DNA from: Leidyana gryllorum EB-2025a
Lineage: Eukaryota > Protista > Apicomplexa
NCBI GenBank assembly: GCA_048772705.1
Contig: JBLWGC010000080.1
Coordinates: 1 to 5,462, forward strand
Direction of reading: 5' to 3'
DNA length: 5,462 nt
The notes beneath the pieces were generated by a model. It did not search any database. It saw only the letters and a list, made by a program, of their open reading frames with translations, and was not told the origin of the DNA. The position numbers and the translations under genes were made by a program. Positions 1 through 5,462 of this stretch are shown piece by piece (positions within the stretch are counted from its first letter, which is position 1; each line of letters begins with the position of its first letter).

Positions 1-2
1 GA

Positions 3-20
3 TGGTATGGCCGCAGCGAT
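3..20 (+). promoter_or_regulatory. Putative primer binding site (TGGTATGGCCGCAGCGAT)
   Basis: TGG follows a 2-nt spacer at the start of the internal region. TGGTAT matches the start of iMet-type PBSs (TGGTATCAGAGC in plants). The 5' LTR is not visible and the cognate tRNA is not identified. Confidence 0.6.
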
Positions 21-1029
21 TAGACCGGGGGATACGACCCCACCCACAGAGGAAGAAAAGAAGCTCGAAGAAAGAATGCGTAGAGTGGAACAGCACCTTG
101 AGGCAATAGCCAACTCCGCAAAGGCGACAGGAAGCCAGACCACCACGAAGGACAAAGCAAAAGACGGAAGCAACGAAGGGGGGAGGAACAAAGCCGACGC
201 CGCATTACGAAAGCTTACCCAGTTCAGCGGCGACTCAGAACCCACAGCATCGGACTGGCTCGACAGTTGTTCAGTCCGTTTCCTCTCACATGGAGTCACG
301 GATGATTATGCGAAGGTGCAAGCAGCTTGCTCACTGCTCACAGGATCGGCAGCCAGATGGCTCCTCAACAAACCTTCAATTATCAACCTCGCATGGCAGG
401 ACTTCACAACACGCCTATTAACACAATTCGATACACTCAAGACGATTCAAGATGATCTGAGCACATTGGCAACAATTAGCAAAACGGGCAGTATGCAGGA
501 GTACGTCCAAACCTTCCAGTCACTCTGCAGAGGCCTAAACCCAGCGGTAGAGGAACGAACGAAGGTCAATTTCTTCTTTAAAGGCCTGCCGAGCAATGAC
601 GCCCAAGCATTAGCACCGTTTGTCGCCGAGAGCAGCGACACTCTTTGTCTCAGAGCACTGCAGTACGACTCCATCATTGGCGGAACCAAACGGAAAGCCG
701 AAGAACACTGCTTCATGGTCCGAGAAAGGCGCACGGGAGGCTCAGTAGGCCGCAGATGCCGGTATTCGTACCAACAATGCATTGAAGAGAAGCGATGCTT
801 CAACTGCGGAGGAAGAGACCACACGGCATGGAAGTGCCGCTTCCCGCGCGATGATAGAACGCGAAACGATTACACGAATGCGAATCAGACAAGCCTGAAC
901 CACCCAGCACGCAAAGTCTTCGCCACAGGAATCCCGGATTTTCAATTCCCCCTAGGACAACCGGTGCAGGTCCTCGAGGGGGCGACCAACCAGATAGGCA
1001 CCCCACACTTACCGCAAAATGGCGCATAA
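7..1029 (+). CDS. gag: Gag polyprotein (capsid + nucleocapsid), 340 aa
   Basis: Retrotransposon capsid motifs FSG..A.DWL, LTGSAARW, W.DF...L..F, GSMQEYVQTF and FFKGL, plus a CX2CX4HX4C zinc knuckle. ATG7 is in good context (ggtATGg); an alternative ATG lies at 76. Confidence 0.93.
   Translation: MAAAIRPGDTTPPTEEEKKLEERMRRVEQHLEAIANSAKATGSQTTTKDKAKDGSNEGGRNKADAALRKLTQFSGDSEPTASDWLDSCSVRFLSHGVTDDYAKVQAACSLLTGSAARWLLNKPSIINLAWQDFTTRLLTQFDTLKTIQDDLSTLATISKTGSMQEYVQTFQSLCRGLNPAVEERTKVNFFFKGLPSNDAQALAPFVAESSDTLCLRALQYDSIIGGTKRKAEEHCFMVRERRTGGSVGRRCRYSYQQCIEEKRCFNCGGRDHTAWKCRFPRDDRTRNDYTNANQTSLNHPARKVFATGIPDFQFPLGQPVQVLEGATNQIGTPHLPQNGA
796..837 (+). other. Nucleocapsid zinc knuckle CFNCGGRDHTAWKC
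   Basis: Exact CX2CX4HX4C spacing in a basic, Arg-rich context. Confidence 0.95.
936..1002 (+). promoter_or_regulatory. -1 programmed ribosomal frameshift signal (slippery heptamer + stem-loop/pseudoknot)
   Basis: G GAT TTT at 936..942 is phased with gag codons and followed by a 5-nt spacer. The stem is CCCCCT-AGGAC (948..958) / GTCCT-cg-AGGGGG (970..982), and loop GGTGC (963..967) is complementary to GCACC (998..1002). The pol frame is -1 to gag and open from 858. Confidence 0.85.
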
Positions 1030-4000
1030 GTCACCCAGAGAACCCCAACAAATCGGTCGAAGCATGCATCCTTATAGACACGGGCGCCTCCATCGCCTGT
1101 GTCAATAAGGATACGGCACAGCTACTGAAGTTGCCACTGGATGGACAGACCTTCACCATCGAGTCGGTTCACGGCAAGCGAGCAGAACAGACAGTGAGAC
1201 TCAGATTGATAACCAGCGCGGGCCAAGCGATAGGAATACAAGCAGCAAGGATAGACCTCCTTCCGTACGACTTGATAATACCAACGGAGACCATAGTCCG
1301 ACTACAACTATGCATTGCCACGAACCAGGATCAGCGCTTGTGCATACTAGAACAGTATGTGGTTCCTGTGACCAAACAACAGGCACAATGGGGATCAGGA
1401 AGGGGCGAGGTACACCTATTACAAGCCGAAACTGACAAAATCGTACCGCCACCGATAGACTCACCGATAGACATACCACCCCGATACGCATACATTCTGA
1501 AAAAGAAGTTTCCTAATCTTACCACAAATACAACACGAATGCCACCATTCAGACCGGGAATAGATCACACAATACAACTCGATGAACCCAACGCACAGCC
1601 CTTCGTCGGACGACCATATAAAATTCCCCAGAAATACGTACCGGAGATGCGCAAACAACTGGTACAACTGGCCAGTGAAGGGAAGATCAGCCTTAGCACA
1701 TCGAGCTGGGCGTCACCGTGTATGTTCGTCCCCAAAAAGGACACAGCCACACCCAGGCTCGTATGCGACTACAGGCGTCTCAACGCAGTCACAGTCAAGC
1801 ATGCCTCAATAATACCCACCATTGATGATGCGCTCCAAGTATTAGCAGGGGCCAAATGGCTCTCCTCACTTGATCTGAAAGCCGGTTATCACCAAGTACG
1901 CATGGAGGAACAATCAAAGTCACTTACCGCATTCACGACGCCCTGGGGGCTATACCACTGGAATGTTATGCCAAATGGACTGATGAACGCACCTGCCACG
2001 TTCATGAGATTGATGAATCAAGTATTTGGGGACTTACTAGGCATTTCGGTCTATGTATACTTGGACGATGTCCTCATCTTCTCACCAACTGAAGCACAAC
2101 ACGTCAGAGACCTGGAAGCCGCTCTACAACGACTGTCAAACCACGACCTGATCATCCACCCTCGAAAGTCACATTTCTTCAAACAGTCGCTCACCTTCCT
2201 CGGTCACACGATTGGGGCAGACGGAATCAGACCAGTCCAAACCAAGATCGACAGCCTAACACAACTCGAGTACCCGAGGACGCTGAAAGAATTGCAAAGG
2301 ATAATGGGAATGATGAACTACTACCGACGTTTCATACCGAATTTCGCGGATGCAGCCCACCCACTGTACAAGTTAGGCAAAGGCTTGAAAGCGCCGAACG
2401 ACAAGACCTCTGAAACGAAGGAAGCGCATGAAGCATTGGAGGACCTCAAACGAGCCATACAGCGCGCTCCCTTACTGAAGTTTCCACATCCGGAAAGCAA
2501 AACACTTGTACTCGACACCGACGCCAGCAATCAAGCACTAGGAGCAGCCCTGCAACAAGAGGAAAATGGAGAATTGGTACCAATCGACTATATGTCACTT
2601 ACACTGAATGACGCACAATCCCGTTACCCGACGCACGAGAAGGAGCTACTAGCGCTGGTGACAGCTTGCAAACATTGGAGACACCTGCTGATTGGGCGGC
2701 GAATTAAAGCTCGAACGGATCACAAACCACTGATTTACCTTTTAAAGCAACCGCACCTATCCGATCGGCAAGCGAGGTGGCTAGTCACACTATCCGAGTT
2801 GGATATAGAGATAAATTATTTGCCAGGAGCCAAAAATTTTATCGCGGATCTATTAAGCCGACCACGAACGAAACCGGATAGACGGGAATGCAACGCCACC
2901 ACTGCAACGGGAACACCGGGAGCAAACGACAACGACCACAGTGGACTGACACAAGACGCAGACACCGCTGAGGAAGCACCGGTGGAAGGTCTAGAAGAAC
3001 GACTAAGGAGAGAATGGGCGCAGCGAAAAAGCGAAGCCGGTAAGTGCGGACAGATCCAATGGATACAAGAACTCCCCGTGACCGAGGACGGGTGCATCGA
3101 GGTACCGGCGGCAGCCGACATCATAAACGAGATTATTAAAGAGAATCATGACAGCAAGATGGCAGGCCATTTGGCCGCGGACAAGACCGCAGGGAGAATA
3201 AGAGCACTGTTCAACTGGAGAGGCCTGATGGCCGATGTCACCAAATACTGTCAAAGCTGCGAAACATGTCAGGTCGCAAAGAAACGCACCCACAAGCCGT
3301 ATGGCTTGTTGCACCCATTAGGGAACCCATCGCTGCCGTGGACCGAAGTCGGTATCGATTTCCTCGAGATGCCCAAGGATCCAGATAGCGGACACGACTA
3401 TTTAATGGTGGTCGTGGACCGATTGACCCGGCGTGTACGCCTCCTTGTCTGCAAGAAGACCATTACGGCCAGTGAAGCAGCACAACTATTCTTATCTAAC
3501 ATAGTGCAGGTACACGGAGTCCCTCGAAAGATAGCCTCAGACAGAGACCGACGCTTTTTGGCCGAAGTATGGACCGAACTGATGAAGTCACTGGGAGTCA
3601 ACTTAGCACGCAGCACCAGCTACCACCCACAGTCGAACGGATTAGTGGAGAGGGCGAATCGAACAATCGTACAGATAATCCGATGCGCTCTGAAAGCGCA
3701 CGGGGGAAACTGGGTAGCATACGTGGCTCCCACGGAAATGGCCTACAATGCAGCACCGCAGGCATCAACTCGCTGCACACCCCTGGAACTGGACACAGGG
3801 AGGACGACGTTTCTACCGTCAAACCTGACGGATATTGCATCCGGACGCAGCGTGACAGGCCGAGTGTATCTTCAGAAGTTACAAGAAGCAACGGATCGAC
3901 TACAGGCAGCTGCAGAGCAACAAAAACACCAAGCGGACAGGCGACGACAAGAGAAACACTTCAGAGTCGGGCAATTGGTCCTATTAGCGACTAAACACTT

Positions 4001-4457
4001 GGCACATGTACCCACCACGAAACTCACCAACCCGTACTGCGGTCCTTTCGAAATTCTTGAGCAAACGGGCGAAGACACTTACCACTTAGCGGTCCCACAG
4101 AGTTGGGGTATATACCCGAAGTTCCACACGAGCAGACTGGAACCATACCACCCTAGAAACACGACAGAAACACGATCAGCAACCACCAACGAACAATCAG
4201 CCTTAGACATCAGAACGGAACATGAAGAGGCAACCCAACCACAACTGTATATAATGAAAGAGATTATTGGCTGGAGAGAAACGAGCAATGGACTAGAGTA
4301 CAAAGTGACATGGGTGGGGTACAACGACCAAACGTGGGAACCAGCAAAGCATGTGACAGACGCTGATGGACACGACCTCATCGAAGCCTTCATGAAGAAA
4401 TGGAACGCAAGATACCCGAAGAACCCGTTCCAAATCCCAGAAGGGGGAGGGATGTAG
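936..4457 (+). CDS. pol: Pol polyprotein (protease, reverse transcriptase, RNase H, integrase, chromodomain), expressed as Gag-Pol
   Basis: The frame is open 858..4457. The ORF-track start at 1131 (TTG) is downstream of the protease active site LIDTGAS (1071..1091), so the real coding region begins upstream, at the frameshift. Confidence 0.95.
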   Translation, partial: GFSIPPRTTGAGPRGGDQPDRHPTLTAKWRISHPENPNKSVEACILIDTGASIACVNKDTAQLLKLPLDGQTFTIESVHGKRAEQTVRLRLITSAGQAIGIQAARIDLLPYDLIIPTETIVRLQLCIATNQDQRLCILEQYVVPVTKQQAQWGSGRGEVHLLQAETDKIVPPPIDSPIDIPPRYAYILKKKFPNLTTNTTRMPPFRPGIDHTIQLDEPNAQPFVGRPYKIPQKYVPEMRKQLVQLASEGKISLSTSSWASPCMFVPKKDTATPRLVCDYRRLNAVTVKHASIIPTIDDALQVLAGAKWLSSLDLKAGYHQVRMEEQSKSLTAFTTPWGLYHWNVMPNGLMNAPATFMRLMNQVFGDLLGISVYVYLDDVLIFSPTEAQHVRDLEAALQRLSNHDLIIHPRKSHFFKQSLTFLGHTIGADGIRPVQTKIDSLTQLEYPRTLKELQRIMGMMNYYRRFIPNFADAAHPLYKLGKGLKAPNDKTSETKEAHEALEDLKRAIQRAPLLKFPHPESKTLVLDTDASNQALGAALQQEENGELVPIDYMSLTLNDAQSRYPTHEKELLALVTACKHWRHLLIGRRIKARTDHKPLIYLLKQPHLSDRQARWLVTLSELDIEINYLPGAKNFIADLLSRPRTKPDRRECNATTATGTPGANDNDHSGLTQDADTAEEAPVEGLEERLRREWAQRKSEAGKCGQIQWIQELPVTEDGCIEVPAAADIINEIIKENHDSKMAGHLAADKTAGRIRALFNWRGLMADVTKYCQSCETCQVAKKRTHKPYGLLHPLGNPSLPWTEVGIDFLEMPKDPDSGHDYLMVVVDRLTRRVRLLVCKKTITASEAAQLFLSNIVQVHGVPRKIASDRDRRFLAEVWTELMKSLGVNLARSTSYHPQSNGLVERANRTIVQIIRCALKAHGGNWVAYVAPTEMAYNAAPQASTRCTPLELDTGRTTFLPSNLTDIASGRSVTGRVYLQKLQEATDRLQAAAEQQKHQADRRRQEKHFRVGQLVLLATKHLAHVPTTKLTNPYCGPFEILEQTGEDTYHLAVPQSWGIYPKFHTSRLEPYHPRNTTETRSATTNEQSALDIRTEHEEATQPQLYIMKEIIGWRETSNGLEYKVTWVGYNDQTWEPAKHVTDADGHDLIEAFMKKWNARYPKNPFQIPEGGGM
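1062..1350 (+). other. Aspartic protease (retropepsin) domain; boundaries approximate
   Basis: ACILIDTGASIACV with catalytic DTG at 1077..1085, flap-like IESVHG, and YDLII. Confidence 0.88.
1560..2250 (+). other. Reverse transcriptase core domain; boundaries approximate
   Basis: Motifs WASPCMFVPKKD, RLVCDYRRLN, LDLKAGYHQ, TAFTTPWGLY, MPNGLMNAPATF, YLDD (2058..2069) and FLGH. Confidence 0.97.
2505..2862 (+). other. RNase H domain (Ty3-type)
   Basis: Motifs LDTDAS, EKELLA, RTDHKPL, RQARW and NFIADLLSR. Confidence 0.95.
3120..4152 (+). other. Integrase (HHCC zinc finger, DD35E core, GPY/F module)
   Basis: H-X6-H-X29-C-X2-C at 3147..3269. D at 3357, D at 3540 and E at 3648 (35-residue spacing). 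GPF at 4041..4049. Confidence 0.96.
4248..4403 (+). other. C-terminal chromodomain (group I-like)
   Basis: YIMKEIIGWRETSNGLEYKVTWVGYNDQTWEPAKHV matches Y.ve.I.......eYlVkWkGy....TWEP. All three aromatic-cage positions (Y, W, Y) are present. Confidence 0.92.
4439..4452 (+). promoter_or_regulatory. Polypurine tract AGAAGGGGGAGGGA
   Basis: 14 consecutive purines immediately before TGTAG. Confidence 0.92.
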
Positions 4458-4509
4458 TAACCTACGGAGGAACCAAGCCACCTTGAGTACACTTTTTAGT
4501 TGCATGACA

Positions 4510-4605
4510 CTGTCTAGCCAGAGCTAGCCCAGCTAAGAACAAACCTGCGTCTCTGTGTCTCGGTGCCGGCCGGGACCGGCACGGAGACACGGGAACACAC
4601 ACTTA
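4510..4605 (+). repeat. Left arm of diverged inverted repeat in the LTR (two-hairpin module)
   Basis: CTAGC-caga-GCTAG (4514..4527), then hairpin GTGTCTC-g-GTGCCGG-ccggga-CCGGCAC-g-GAGACAC (4555..4590), then AACACAC..ACTTA. Confidence 0.75.
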
Positions 4606-4656
4606 GGAGACCAGGCCTTGACAACCGATGGAACTTCGCGGTCGCCATTTACCCGT

Positions 4657-4728
4657 TTACATAGGGTACGCGGTTTTCACGGTTCGTTCGTTGAGTGCTC
4701 TATAGTCGCAGACGAGGCGAGGGGTCGT
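4657..4728 (-). pseudogene. Short reverse-transcriptase remnant TTPRLVCDYRALNERTVKTAYPM*
   Basis: Manual translation of the minus strand, in the +1 frame relative to the antisense Gag ORF. 14/17 aa are identical to the element's own RT segment TPRLVCDYRRLNAVTVK (1749..1799). Confidence 0.85.
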
Positions 4729-5254
4729 CAGTTGTGGATCGGGGAGCGAATTCCTTCAAGAAGGAGGACTGGAAGTTGTCCCAGCTTTGGTCGGGTAAGT
4801 CGGGTAAGGTCAGGGCCCACTGTGCGGCTGAGCCGTGGAGGTAAGAGCATGCCCACGCTGCCCGGTGGTCGTCTGGGGTGTGGCGTGTCCTGAATCGAAG
4901 AGATATGGCGTCAAGCCACTCTTGAGCTTCCTTGCGACGTCGGCCGTCGAAGGTAGGCATGTTCTTCAGCGGATCTTGTCCGTCCATGAAGATGGCATCC
5001 CTGGCCGGAGGTGGCTGCGGACTCGTGGGGTGCACCGTCGGCTGGGAAGTCGCCGCTGCGCCCGATCGGAGCAAGGTGAGTATTTCAAGCATAGCGTTAT
5101 TCAGTAGATCTAGGTTGGTTGAGCTTTCTAGGTGAGTGGTGGCCAAGGATTCGGAGGAAGAGGACGTCGGTTGTTTGGTGGCTTGGGTGGTTTCTAACGA
5201 CGCACTGCTACCATTTTCAGCCCCGCGGGCTTCACTGTTCTTTCTAGGAGGCAT
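4700..5254 (-). CDS. Antisense truncated Gag-like protein (capsid N-terminal domain only), 184 aa, inside the LTR
   Basis: ATG at 5254 in accATGc context (the track start at 5311 is GTG). Residues 95-169 align with Gag residues 66-141 at 27/76 identity with one gap (F.G.....A..WLD..S.RF, DD, ACS.L.GSAA.W.L..P, W..F....L..F). Strand composition flips relative to gag-pol. Confidence 0.85.
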   Translation of the reverse strand: MPPRKNSEARGAENGSSASLETTQATKQPTSSSSESLATTHLESSTNLDLLNNAMLEILTLLRSGAAATSQPTVHPTSPQPPPARDAIFMDGQDPLKNMPTFDGRRRKEAQEWLDAISLRFRTRHTPDDHRAAWACSYLHGSAAQWALTLPDLPDQSWDNFQSSFLKEFAPRSTTDDPSPRLRL

Positions 5255-5300
5255 GGTTGATCTCGACGGTAATTCTGGTTCGCGGCACGCAACGAAAAGG

Positions 5301-5384
5301 TAAGTACACACGTGTGTTGTTGTGTCTCCGGCCGGCCGGCCCGGGTCGAGACACGCAATTTGCCGGATTGGCTCCGGCCAACAG
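5301..5384 (-). repeat. Right arm of diverged inverted repeat in the LTR (two-hairpin module; candidate antisense promoter/leader)
   Basis: On the minus strand: TTGGC-cgga-GCCAA(T), then GTGTCTC...GAGACAC (5322..5354), then AACACAC..ACTTA, in the same order as the left arm. It contains CCAAT (minus strand, 5367..5371). Confidence 0.75.
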
Positions 5385-5462
5385 GTTACAGACTTCTGGG
5401 AGGGTTTCCTACCTGGTACGCAGTAGTCGGCCGCCCCGCTGAGTGCCGGTGCCGGGGCTACA

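Follow-up and report, generated by a model that had tools for sequence, protein, structure and literature searches.

The question raised by this locus is whether the LTR of a retrotransposon carries, on its antisense strand, a gene for a truncated capsid protein, or whether the reading frame found there belongs to something else. In the window, by which is meant the whole stretch of 5,462 nucleotides that was analysed, a Ty3/gypsy element of chromovirus type (element A) occupies the plus strand in the order PBS region, gag, pol and 3' LTR, and an uninterrupted Gag-like ORF lies on the minus strand near its 3' end. The initial annotation placed this ORF inside the LTR of A and proposed it as a candidate capsid-based restriction or copy-number-control gene. 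The observations described here make it probable that the ORF is the truncated gag of a second retrotransposon (element B), which is inverted relative to A, internally deleted and lies against it.

The minus-strand ORF and its predicted product

The gag of element A (positions 7 to 1029, plus strand) encodes 340 aa from an ATG at position 7, matches Retrotrans_gag (1.2e-9) and Ty3_capsid (3.1e-9) and contains one CCHC knuckle; its reading frame is open to the start of the window. The pol frame (858 to 4457, plus strand; first listed start codon at 1131) was recognised from the ORF listing and Pfam and encodes PR, RT, RNaseH, IN, an SH3-like domain and a chromodomain. Its stop overlaps a polypurine tract (4439 to 4452, plus strand) that lies directly before TGTAG at 4453, and the layout of the sister element L001 is alike, with a purine run followed by TGTAAG. 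In A, gag and pol overlap by about 170 nt (858 to 1029), with pol in the -1 frame; close to the gag stop, a canonical slippery heptamer is not obvious.

The ORF on the opposite strand extends from an ATG at 5254 to a stop codon at 4700 to 4702 (4700 to 5254, stop included) and encodes 184 aa, as the initial annotation had described; a GTG start upstream would give a version of 203 aa (4700 to 5311). The minus frame is free of stops from 5461, at the window end, down to 4700, and this open length of 253 codons was matched by only 5 of 2000 shuffles. The context of the ATG, which had been called good, has A at -3 and C at +4, so that the start codon is usable but short of optimal. Residues 96-178 of the ORF product align with residues 67-149 of the A Gag at 29 of 83 positions (35% identity, BLASTP E 7e-15), in agreement with the 27 of 76 noted earlier, and the similarity is reproduced by tblastn. 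Pfam scored the product at 25.2 bits for Ty3_capsid and at 23.4 bits for Retrotrans_gag, slightly less than the curated thresholds of 29.1 and 24.1, because only about half of each model is present. A phmmer search returned the N-terminal halves of Gag proteins (E 3e-6 to 7e-4). By sequence homology, the product belongs to the capsid N-terminal domain (NTD) of Ty3/gypsy (Metaviridae) Gag proteins.

A structure model of the product, obtained with AlphaFold2 from a 16-sequence alignment, has a pLDDT above 90 across residues 100-170 and contains four helices in its capsid part (109-123, 128-137, 141-149 and 158-169) in addition to an N-terminal helix (40-67). The best Foldseek matches in the PDB were the dArc1 capsid and the human Arc N-lobe (TM 0.69-0.77 on the target) and the Ty3 CA-NTD 6r22 (66 of 74 columns, TM 0.68). 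Overall, the matches had an rmsd of 1.7-2.5 Å over 59-73 columns and covered nearly all of target domains of 67-75 residues; their E-values are weak (0.07-1) because the N-lobe is a short domain. The comparison of folds succeeded where phmmer against PDB sequences gave no match. BLASTP, AlphaFold2 and Foldseek, together with the Pfam matches under threshold, place a capsid N-lobe at residues 96-170 (4745 to 4969, minus strand), and the predicted fold is that of a complete Ty3/Arc N-lobe of four helices, as known from the Ty3 CA-NTD and Arc N-lobe structures (6r22, 6tno, 6s7y). In contrast to the Ty3 and Arc capsids, the ORF has the N-lobe alone, the C-lobe and zinc knuckle having apparently been lost through deletion. 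Upstream of the N-lobe, the model and comparison with other Gags indicate a predicted helix (residues 40-67; 5054 to 5137, minus strand) and a Pro/Ser-rich linker, and this order of helix, Pro-rich linker and NTD is the layout of the N-terminal half in full-length Gags (P0131, P0135 and the A Gag). The model has no CTD helices and the product no zinc knuckle. The structural comparison with the Ty3/Arc capsid NTD that the initial annotation had proposed therefore bears out its description of a truncated Gag paralogue, composed of helix, linker and CA-NTD and ending before the CTD and knuckle.

An intact ORF with a usable ATG, a complete N-lobe predicted with confidence and a frame longer than in 1995 of 2000 shuffles are features that could also belong to a functional protein. 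Such a protein would be an NTD-only Gag, transcribed from the LTR of B or from an antisense promoter whatever the origin of the ORF, and would serve as an accessory capsid subunit or exert a dominant-negative effect on A, B or a sister family. Restriction factors that derive from Gag are well established as a class (PMC4599808, PMC8458377, PMC10951436). A function of this kind is nevertheless considered very unlikely here, for reasons that begin with how the ORF ends.

An RT fragment of the proposed element B and the probable end of A's LTR

The Gag homology is followed directly, on the strand of the ORF but in another frame, by a piece of RT of 22 aa (TPRLVCDYRALNERTVKTAYPM; 4660 to 4725, minus strand). 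It was recognised by tblastn with the pol of A (E 1e-6, 15 of 22 residues identical) and by six-frame reading. The string PRLVCDY within it is common to A and the sister P0001/L001 but otherwise rare (one further case among 107 pol matches), and the fragment retains an ancestral YPM where A has diverged. The Gag homology ends at ..TTDD (4724) and the RT homology begins with TTPRLV (4728), so that the alignment edges define a junction at 4724 to 4728 (minus strand) at which the frame changes and which joins the equivalents of residue ~149 of the A Gag and residue ~205 of the A pol. The last ~8 residues of the ORF (PSPRLRL) are the RT piece read out of frame, and this wrong frame first meets a stop at 4700, 8 codons past the junction. 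A frame-changing deletion between gag and RT thus accounts for both the truncation and the stop. Judged from the sequence around the junction, the end of the ORF at the NTD/CTD boundary appears to be an accident of this deletion and not a designed domain end. This argues against a functional truncated capsid.

The RT fragment also bears on the extent of the LTR of A. TTTACA stands at 4656 to 4661, and this end falls within 2 nt of the edge of the antisense RT homology (4660). Since the RT homology of B halts at TTTACA, the 3' LTR of A probably ends at 4661. With the polypurine tract in front, the TACA end and the RT edge, the interval from 4453 to 4661 (plus strand, TGTAG...TTTACA; hereafter LTR_A) is probably a complete LTR of only ~209 bp that ends before the stretch containing the ORF. 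Plus-strand AT and GC skew both flip sign at ~4650, beyond which the minus strand is A-rich in the manner of the coding strand of A. L004, the only relative with an LTR that can be delimited, has a short one as well, with ~277 bp between polypurine tract and PBS and an end in ..ATTACA.

The assignment of 4453-4661 to B, as its 3' LTR, was considered and rejected: the purine tract directly before TGTAG is on the plus strand, and LTR_A and the probable 5' LTR of B described below are alike only across their hairpin region, at ~70% identity.

Two further plus-strand ORFs, of 112 aa (4555 to 4893) and 90 aa (4835 to 5107), run across the antisense ORF. Both lack homology and are probably meaningless products of a GC-rich sequence that is poor in stops.

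The probable 5' end of element B and the proposed arrangement of the two elements

On the other side of the ORF, 41 nt past its ATG, the 5' part of the frame contains the PBS-like sequence TGGTAGCAGTG (5203 to 5213, minus strand), which occurs only once in the window. The 11 nt next to the LTR end of L001 are the same, and the border there reads ..ACAACAC and then TGGTAGCAGTGG. In L004, the PBS TGGTAGCAGCGCGTTG follows ..GATTACA-C and agrees with B at 14 of 16 nt. The first 9 nt of the B PBS, TGGTAGCAG, begin a PBS complementary to initiator tRNA-Met (PMC1797187). With respect to the codons, the PBS is placed alike in B and L001 (xxT GGT A..), and the divergent TGGTA at the PBS position of A agrees with this phase.

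The PBS-like stretch of A itself (window positions 1-30) contains TGGTA, TGGCC and GCAGCG and is unlike those of B, L001 and L004. Its first 5 nt agree with the relatives' TGGTAGCAG(C/T)G, agreement resumes from GCAGCG, and TGGCCGCAGCG, read from window position 8, matches the relatives' PBS at 9 of 11 positions. The gag ATG of A (7-9) lies inside this stretch.

The sequence that precedes the PBS of B is probably its 5' LTR (LTR_B, ~249 bp, 5214 to 5462, minus strand). It begins with TGTAG at 5462, the same terminus as that of LTR_A at 4453, contains the ATG of the ORF and is followed by PBS and gag; a CA immediately before the PBS is absent. Both LTRs contain homologous, extended and GC-rich palindromes (GTGTCTC..GAGACAC) followed by AACACAC, at closely similar distances from the terminus. 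In LTR_A the GC-rich hairpin lies at 4555 to 4590, 103 nt from the LTR start, and the fold of 4525-4615 has a dG of -23.1 (z -5.1); in LTR_B it lies at 5323 to 5355 (AACACAC included), 108 nt from the start, and the fold of 5295-5385 has a dG of -18.9 (z -1.9). The local alignment of LTR_A with LTR_B scored 39, compared with a mean of 17.4 and a maximum of 30 in 1000 dinucleotide shuffles. As the hairpin is palindromic, the score in direct orientation (41) is equally strong, and the orientation of LTR_B is deduced from its terminus, from the spacing and from the PBS and gag behind it. The LTR of L004 has no significant similarity to LTR_A or LTR_B, and what it contributes is limited to its length, the ..TTACA end and the PBS. 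The CGGAGACA motif is found in this LTR at a distance from the start (~105 nt) similar to that of the palindromes in LTR_A and LTR_B. These palindromes might serve as an R-region stem, a terminator or a dimerisation site. The LTR of L004 starts with CGTAG, those of A and B with TGTAG.

The gag ATG of B thus lies upstream of the PBS, in the supposed U5 (5214-5254), and its frame runs through the PBS. In L001 (2-160), too, no stop interrupts the gag frame across the final 30 nt of the LTR and the PBS; in L004 the gag ATG is found 6 nt after the PBS. A gag frame that runs through the PBS may be a trait of the lineage.

Apart from the ATG that precedes the PBS and the missing CA, the antisense stretch has the 5' end of a retrotransposon in its own right: an LTR terminus beginning with TG, a PBS, the start of gag and a piece of RT follow one another in the correct order, which argues that it is an independent element. 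A location of the ORF within the LTR of A consequently finds no support in its flanks, which are a PBS and LTR-like terminus of B on one side and an RT fragment of B on the other.

The window would thus contain two related Ty3/gypsy elements of chromovirus type in opposite orientation, with the remnant of B on the minus strand abutting the 3' LTR of A head-on. B would represent a different family from A within the same narrow lineage, its Gag-NTD being 35% identical to that of A, and the remnant would consist of a 5' LTR (5462 to ~5214), an iMet-type PBS (5213-5203) and the first half of gag, whose ATG at 5254 lies in U5 and whose frame passes through the PBS. An internal deletion would have fused gag to the 22-codon RT piece and shifted the frame, creating the stop 8 codons on. 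The ORF would then be a by-product of an adjacent or nested insertion and a deletion, its frame still being open since the remnant is young. Either A inserted into or beside B, or B inserted into the surroundings of A. The chromodomain in the integrase of A would lead one to expect such elements to cluster in the same chromatin. Several points weigh against this account. Besides the palindromic nature of the hairpin, the missing CA of LTR_B, the dissimilar LTR of L004 and the edges of the window discussed below, the true LTR end of A is not observed in the window, which has a single copy of the element and no 5' LTR of it (the first letters are GA followed by TGGTATGG), and an open frame of 253 codons is unusual for debris, though expected of a recent remnant.

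Alternatively, all of 4453-5462 could be the LTR of the family of A, an ancestral short LTR having absorbed an inverted remnant of B. TGTAG at 4453 and CTACA at 5462 would then form a perfect 5-bp terminal inverted repeat of a 1010-bp LTR. The window ends exactly at CTACA and starts 2 nt before TGGTA and 7 nt before TGGCCGCAGCG, edges that fit an assembly in which internal region and LTR have been collapsed. LTRs of 1 kb are also common among Ty3/gypsy elements. A simple nested insertion, however, should leave LTR sequence of A on both sides, and the outer end here is the LTR terminus of B, beyond which there is no sequence of A. The first 209 bp already look complete, with a TTTACA end at the point where the RT fragment of B stops, the LTR of the relative L004 is short (~277 bp), and several additional rearrangement steps would be required. 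On balance, a composite LTR appears unlikely, if clearly the best of the alternatives. If it were true, the ORF would be found in the LTRs at both ends and in solo LTRs, whether functional or not, and the 5' LTR of A would be ~1 kb long, ending in ..GGGGCTACA directly before GATGGTATGG. If A and B are instead two abutting elements, the 5' LTR of A would be ~209 bp long and end in ..CCCGTTTACA before GATGGTATGG. An in-frame ATG upstream of the A Gag is absent in both candidate LTR ends and hence does not discriminate between them.

A further possibility is that B inserted in a longer LTR of A that continues past the window, and that a later deletion removed the 3' part of B, so that 4661 would be a deletion junction. 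This would account for the order LTR, PBS, gag and RT in B and for the abrupt end of the RT homology. Such a deletion, however, must by chance have ended at a TACA that yields a plausible 209-bp LTR of TG..CA form, and nothing in the window calls for further LTR sequence of A. This sequence of events is regarded as very unlikely, and even then the ORF would be that of B, in one copy only.

As a lesson for the definition of LTRs, a polypurine tract on one side does not suffice, even with a fitting TG..CA at the edge of a window. Fragments of RT, a PBS and another LTR terminus on the opposite strand are signs of a second element.

Known systems, relatives and the possibility of a function

Nested or adjacent insertions and internally deleted LTR retrotransposons are well known, for example from the intergenic nests of maize and from chromovirus clusters in heterochromatin. 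The locus resembles such nests in that related elements abut inversely and one of them is cut down to LTR, PBS, partial gag and an RT fragment. It differs in that the families of A and B are otherwise unrecorded, the nearest pol, on a Logan contig, being 53-56% identical. Antisense genes are also known from retroelements, among them HBZ of HTLV-1, ASP of HIV-1 and the extra antisense ORFs of plant Tat/Ogre elements, and the ORF is similarly opposite to the gag-pol strand and near the 3' end. To our knowledge, all of these are part of their own element and none is a Gag paralogue, whereas the present ORF has an LTR terminus and a PBS of its own and hence belongs to another element.

Fv1 and enJS56A1, restriction factors of mammals that derive from Gag, are fixed loci of the host and are backed by experiments and population data. 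The initial annotation likewise envisaged that the Gag of one family acts on another. Evidence of this kind sets Fv1 and enJS56A1 apart from the present ORF. A comparison can also be drawn with yeast-type control of copy number, by partial Gag proteins encoded by the transposon, as a partial Gag could in principle poison capsid assembly. The Ty1 p22/p18 proteins and the domesticated Drt2, however, consist of the CA C-terminal domain of a Ty1/copia Gag, are read in sense orientation from an internal promoter or represent a domesticated relic, and have a demonstrated restriction activity (PMC4599808, PMC8458377, PMC10951436). The ORF described here, in contrast, is a Ty3/gypsy Gag NTD produced by a frame-shifting deletion. 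Since p22/p18 and Drt2, the best-studied capsid inhibitors of Ty type, act via the CA CTD (PMC8458377, PMC10951436), the ending of the ORF after the N-lobe in the model counts against a similar activity. No orthologue or paralogue of the short form was found among 15 billion proteins, where the best matches were fragments or N-terminal halves of ordinary Gags with 26-38% identity. A role in restriction or copy-number control is speculation.

The relatives that could be found are few. Exact look-up of the ORF product (184 and 203 aa) and the A Gag (340 and 342 aa) showed none of these proteins on record, and a word-based homologue search with the ORF and with the A Gag gave no matches. The same type of search with pol gave one relative above 43% identity, P0001, at 56%; it is encoded by the sister L001, whose pol is ~53% identical to that of A. 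A HMMER scan of 1.8 billion representatives returned 17 weak matches to the ORF. The top match, P0121, was set aside as a repeat-protein artefact, and the others are ordinary N-terminal halves or fragments of Gags with 25-38% identity and E-values of 3e-6 or worse. The only named Gag relative is a EukProt entry labelled Gregarina sp. Poly1, a label that may reflect contamination from host or prey. Peptide patterns of the ORF found no relative in metagenome, viral and prokaryotic genome contigs, and neither did exact DNA patterns of the PBS regions of A and B in contigs of the same three kinds. A second copy of A or B was not found in the protein, viral, metagenome and genome collections searched. 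The contigs of the more distant relatives L002 and L003 had no LTR pairs, and Rfam gave no match.

The sister L001 is a Logan contig (ERR10900103, 4559 nt) with several frame changes in gag and pol. Of the LTR, precisely 30 nt remain at either end, as is typical of a k=31 unitig that breaks at LTR borders. L004 (Logan contig SRR6399932) was reached through the Gag match P0125. In it (1-1461 and 1456-1760), the pol C-terminus of an upstream copy and a purine tract are followed by the LTR of ~277 bp and by the PBS and gag of the next copy, an arrangement that is either a tandem or a collapsed LTR-internal cycle.

There is a slim chance that the remnant of B is now part of a functional unit, either as a 1-kb LTR of the family of A or as a retained locus, and expresses an NTD-only Gag antisense to A. 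If so, this protein would hinder the capsid assembly of A or B and would be an N-lobe-based Ty3/gypsy counterpart of Ty1 p22/Drt2 or of Fv1. An LTR-borne antisense capsid fragment would then give a retrotransposon a novel means of self-regulation or of combating a rival. The evidence, however, points to the commonest case in repeat-rich DNA, two related elements that adjoin, one of them broken, and the ORF is most likely the ordinary kind of debris that transposons leave rather than a new LTR-borne gene. Of modest descriptive interest is the lineage itself: together with L001 and L004, the families of A and B represent a poorly sampled group of chromoviruses, with an iMet-type PBS that is crossed by the gag frame and short LTRs of ~200-280 bp.
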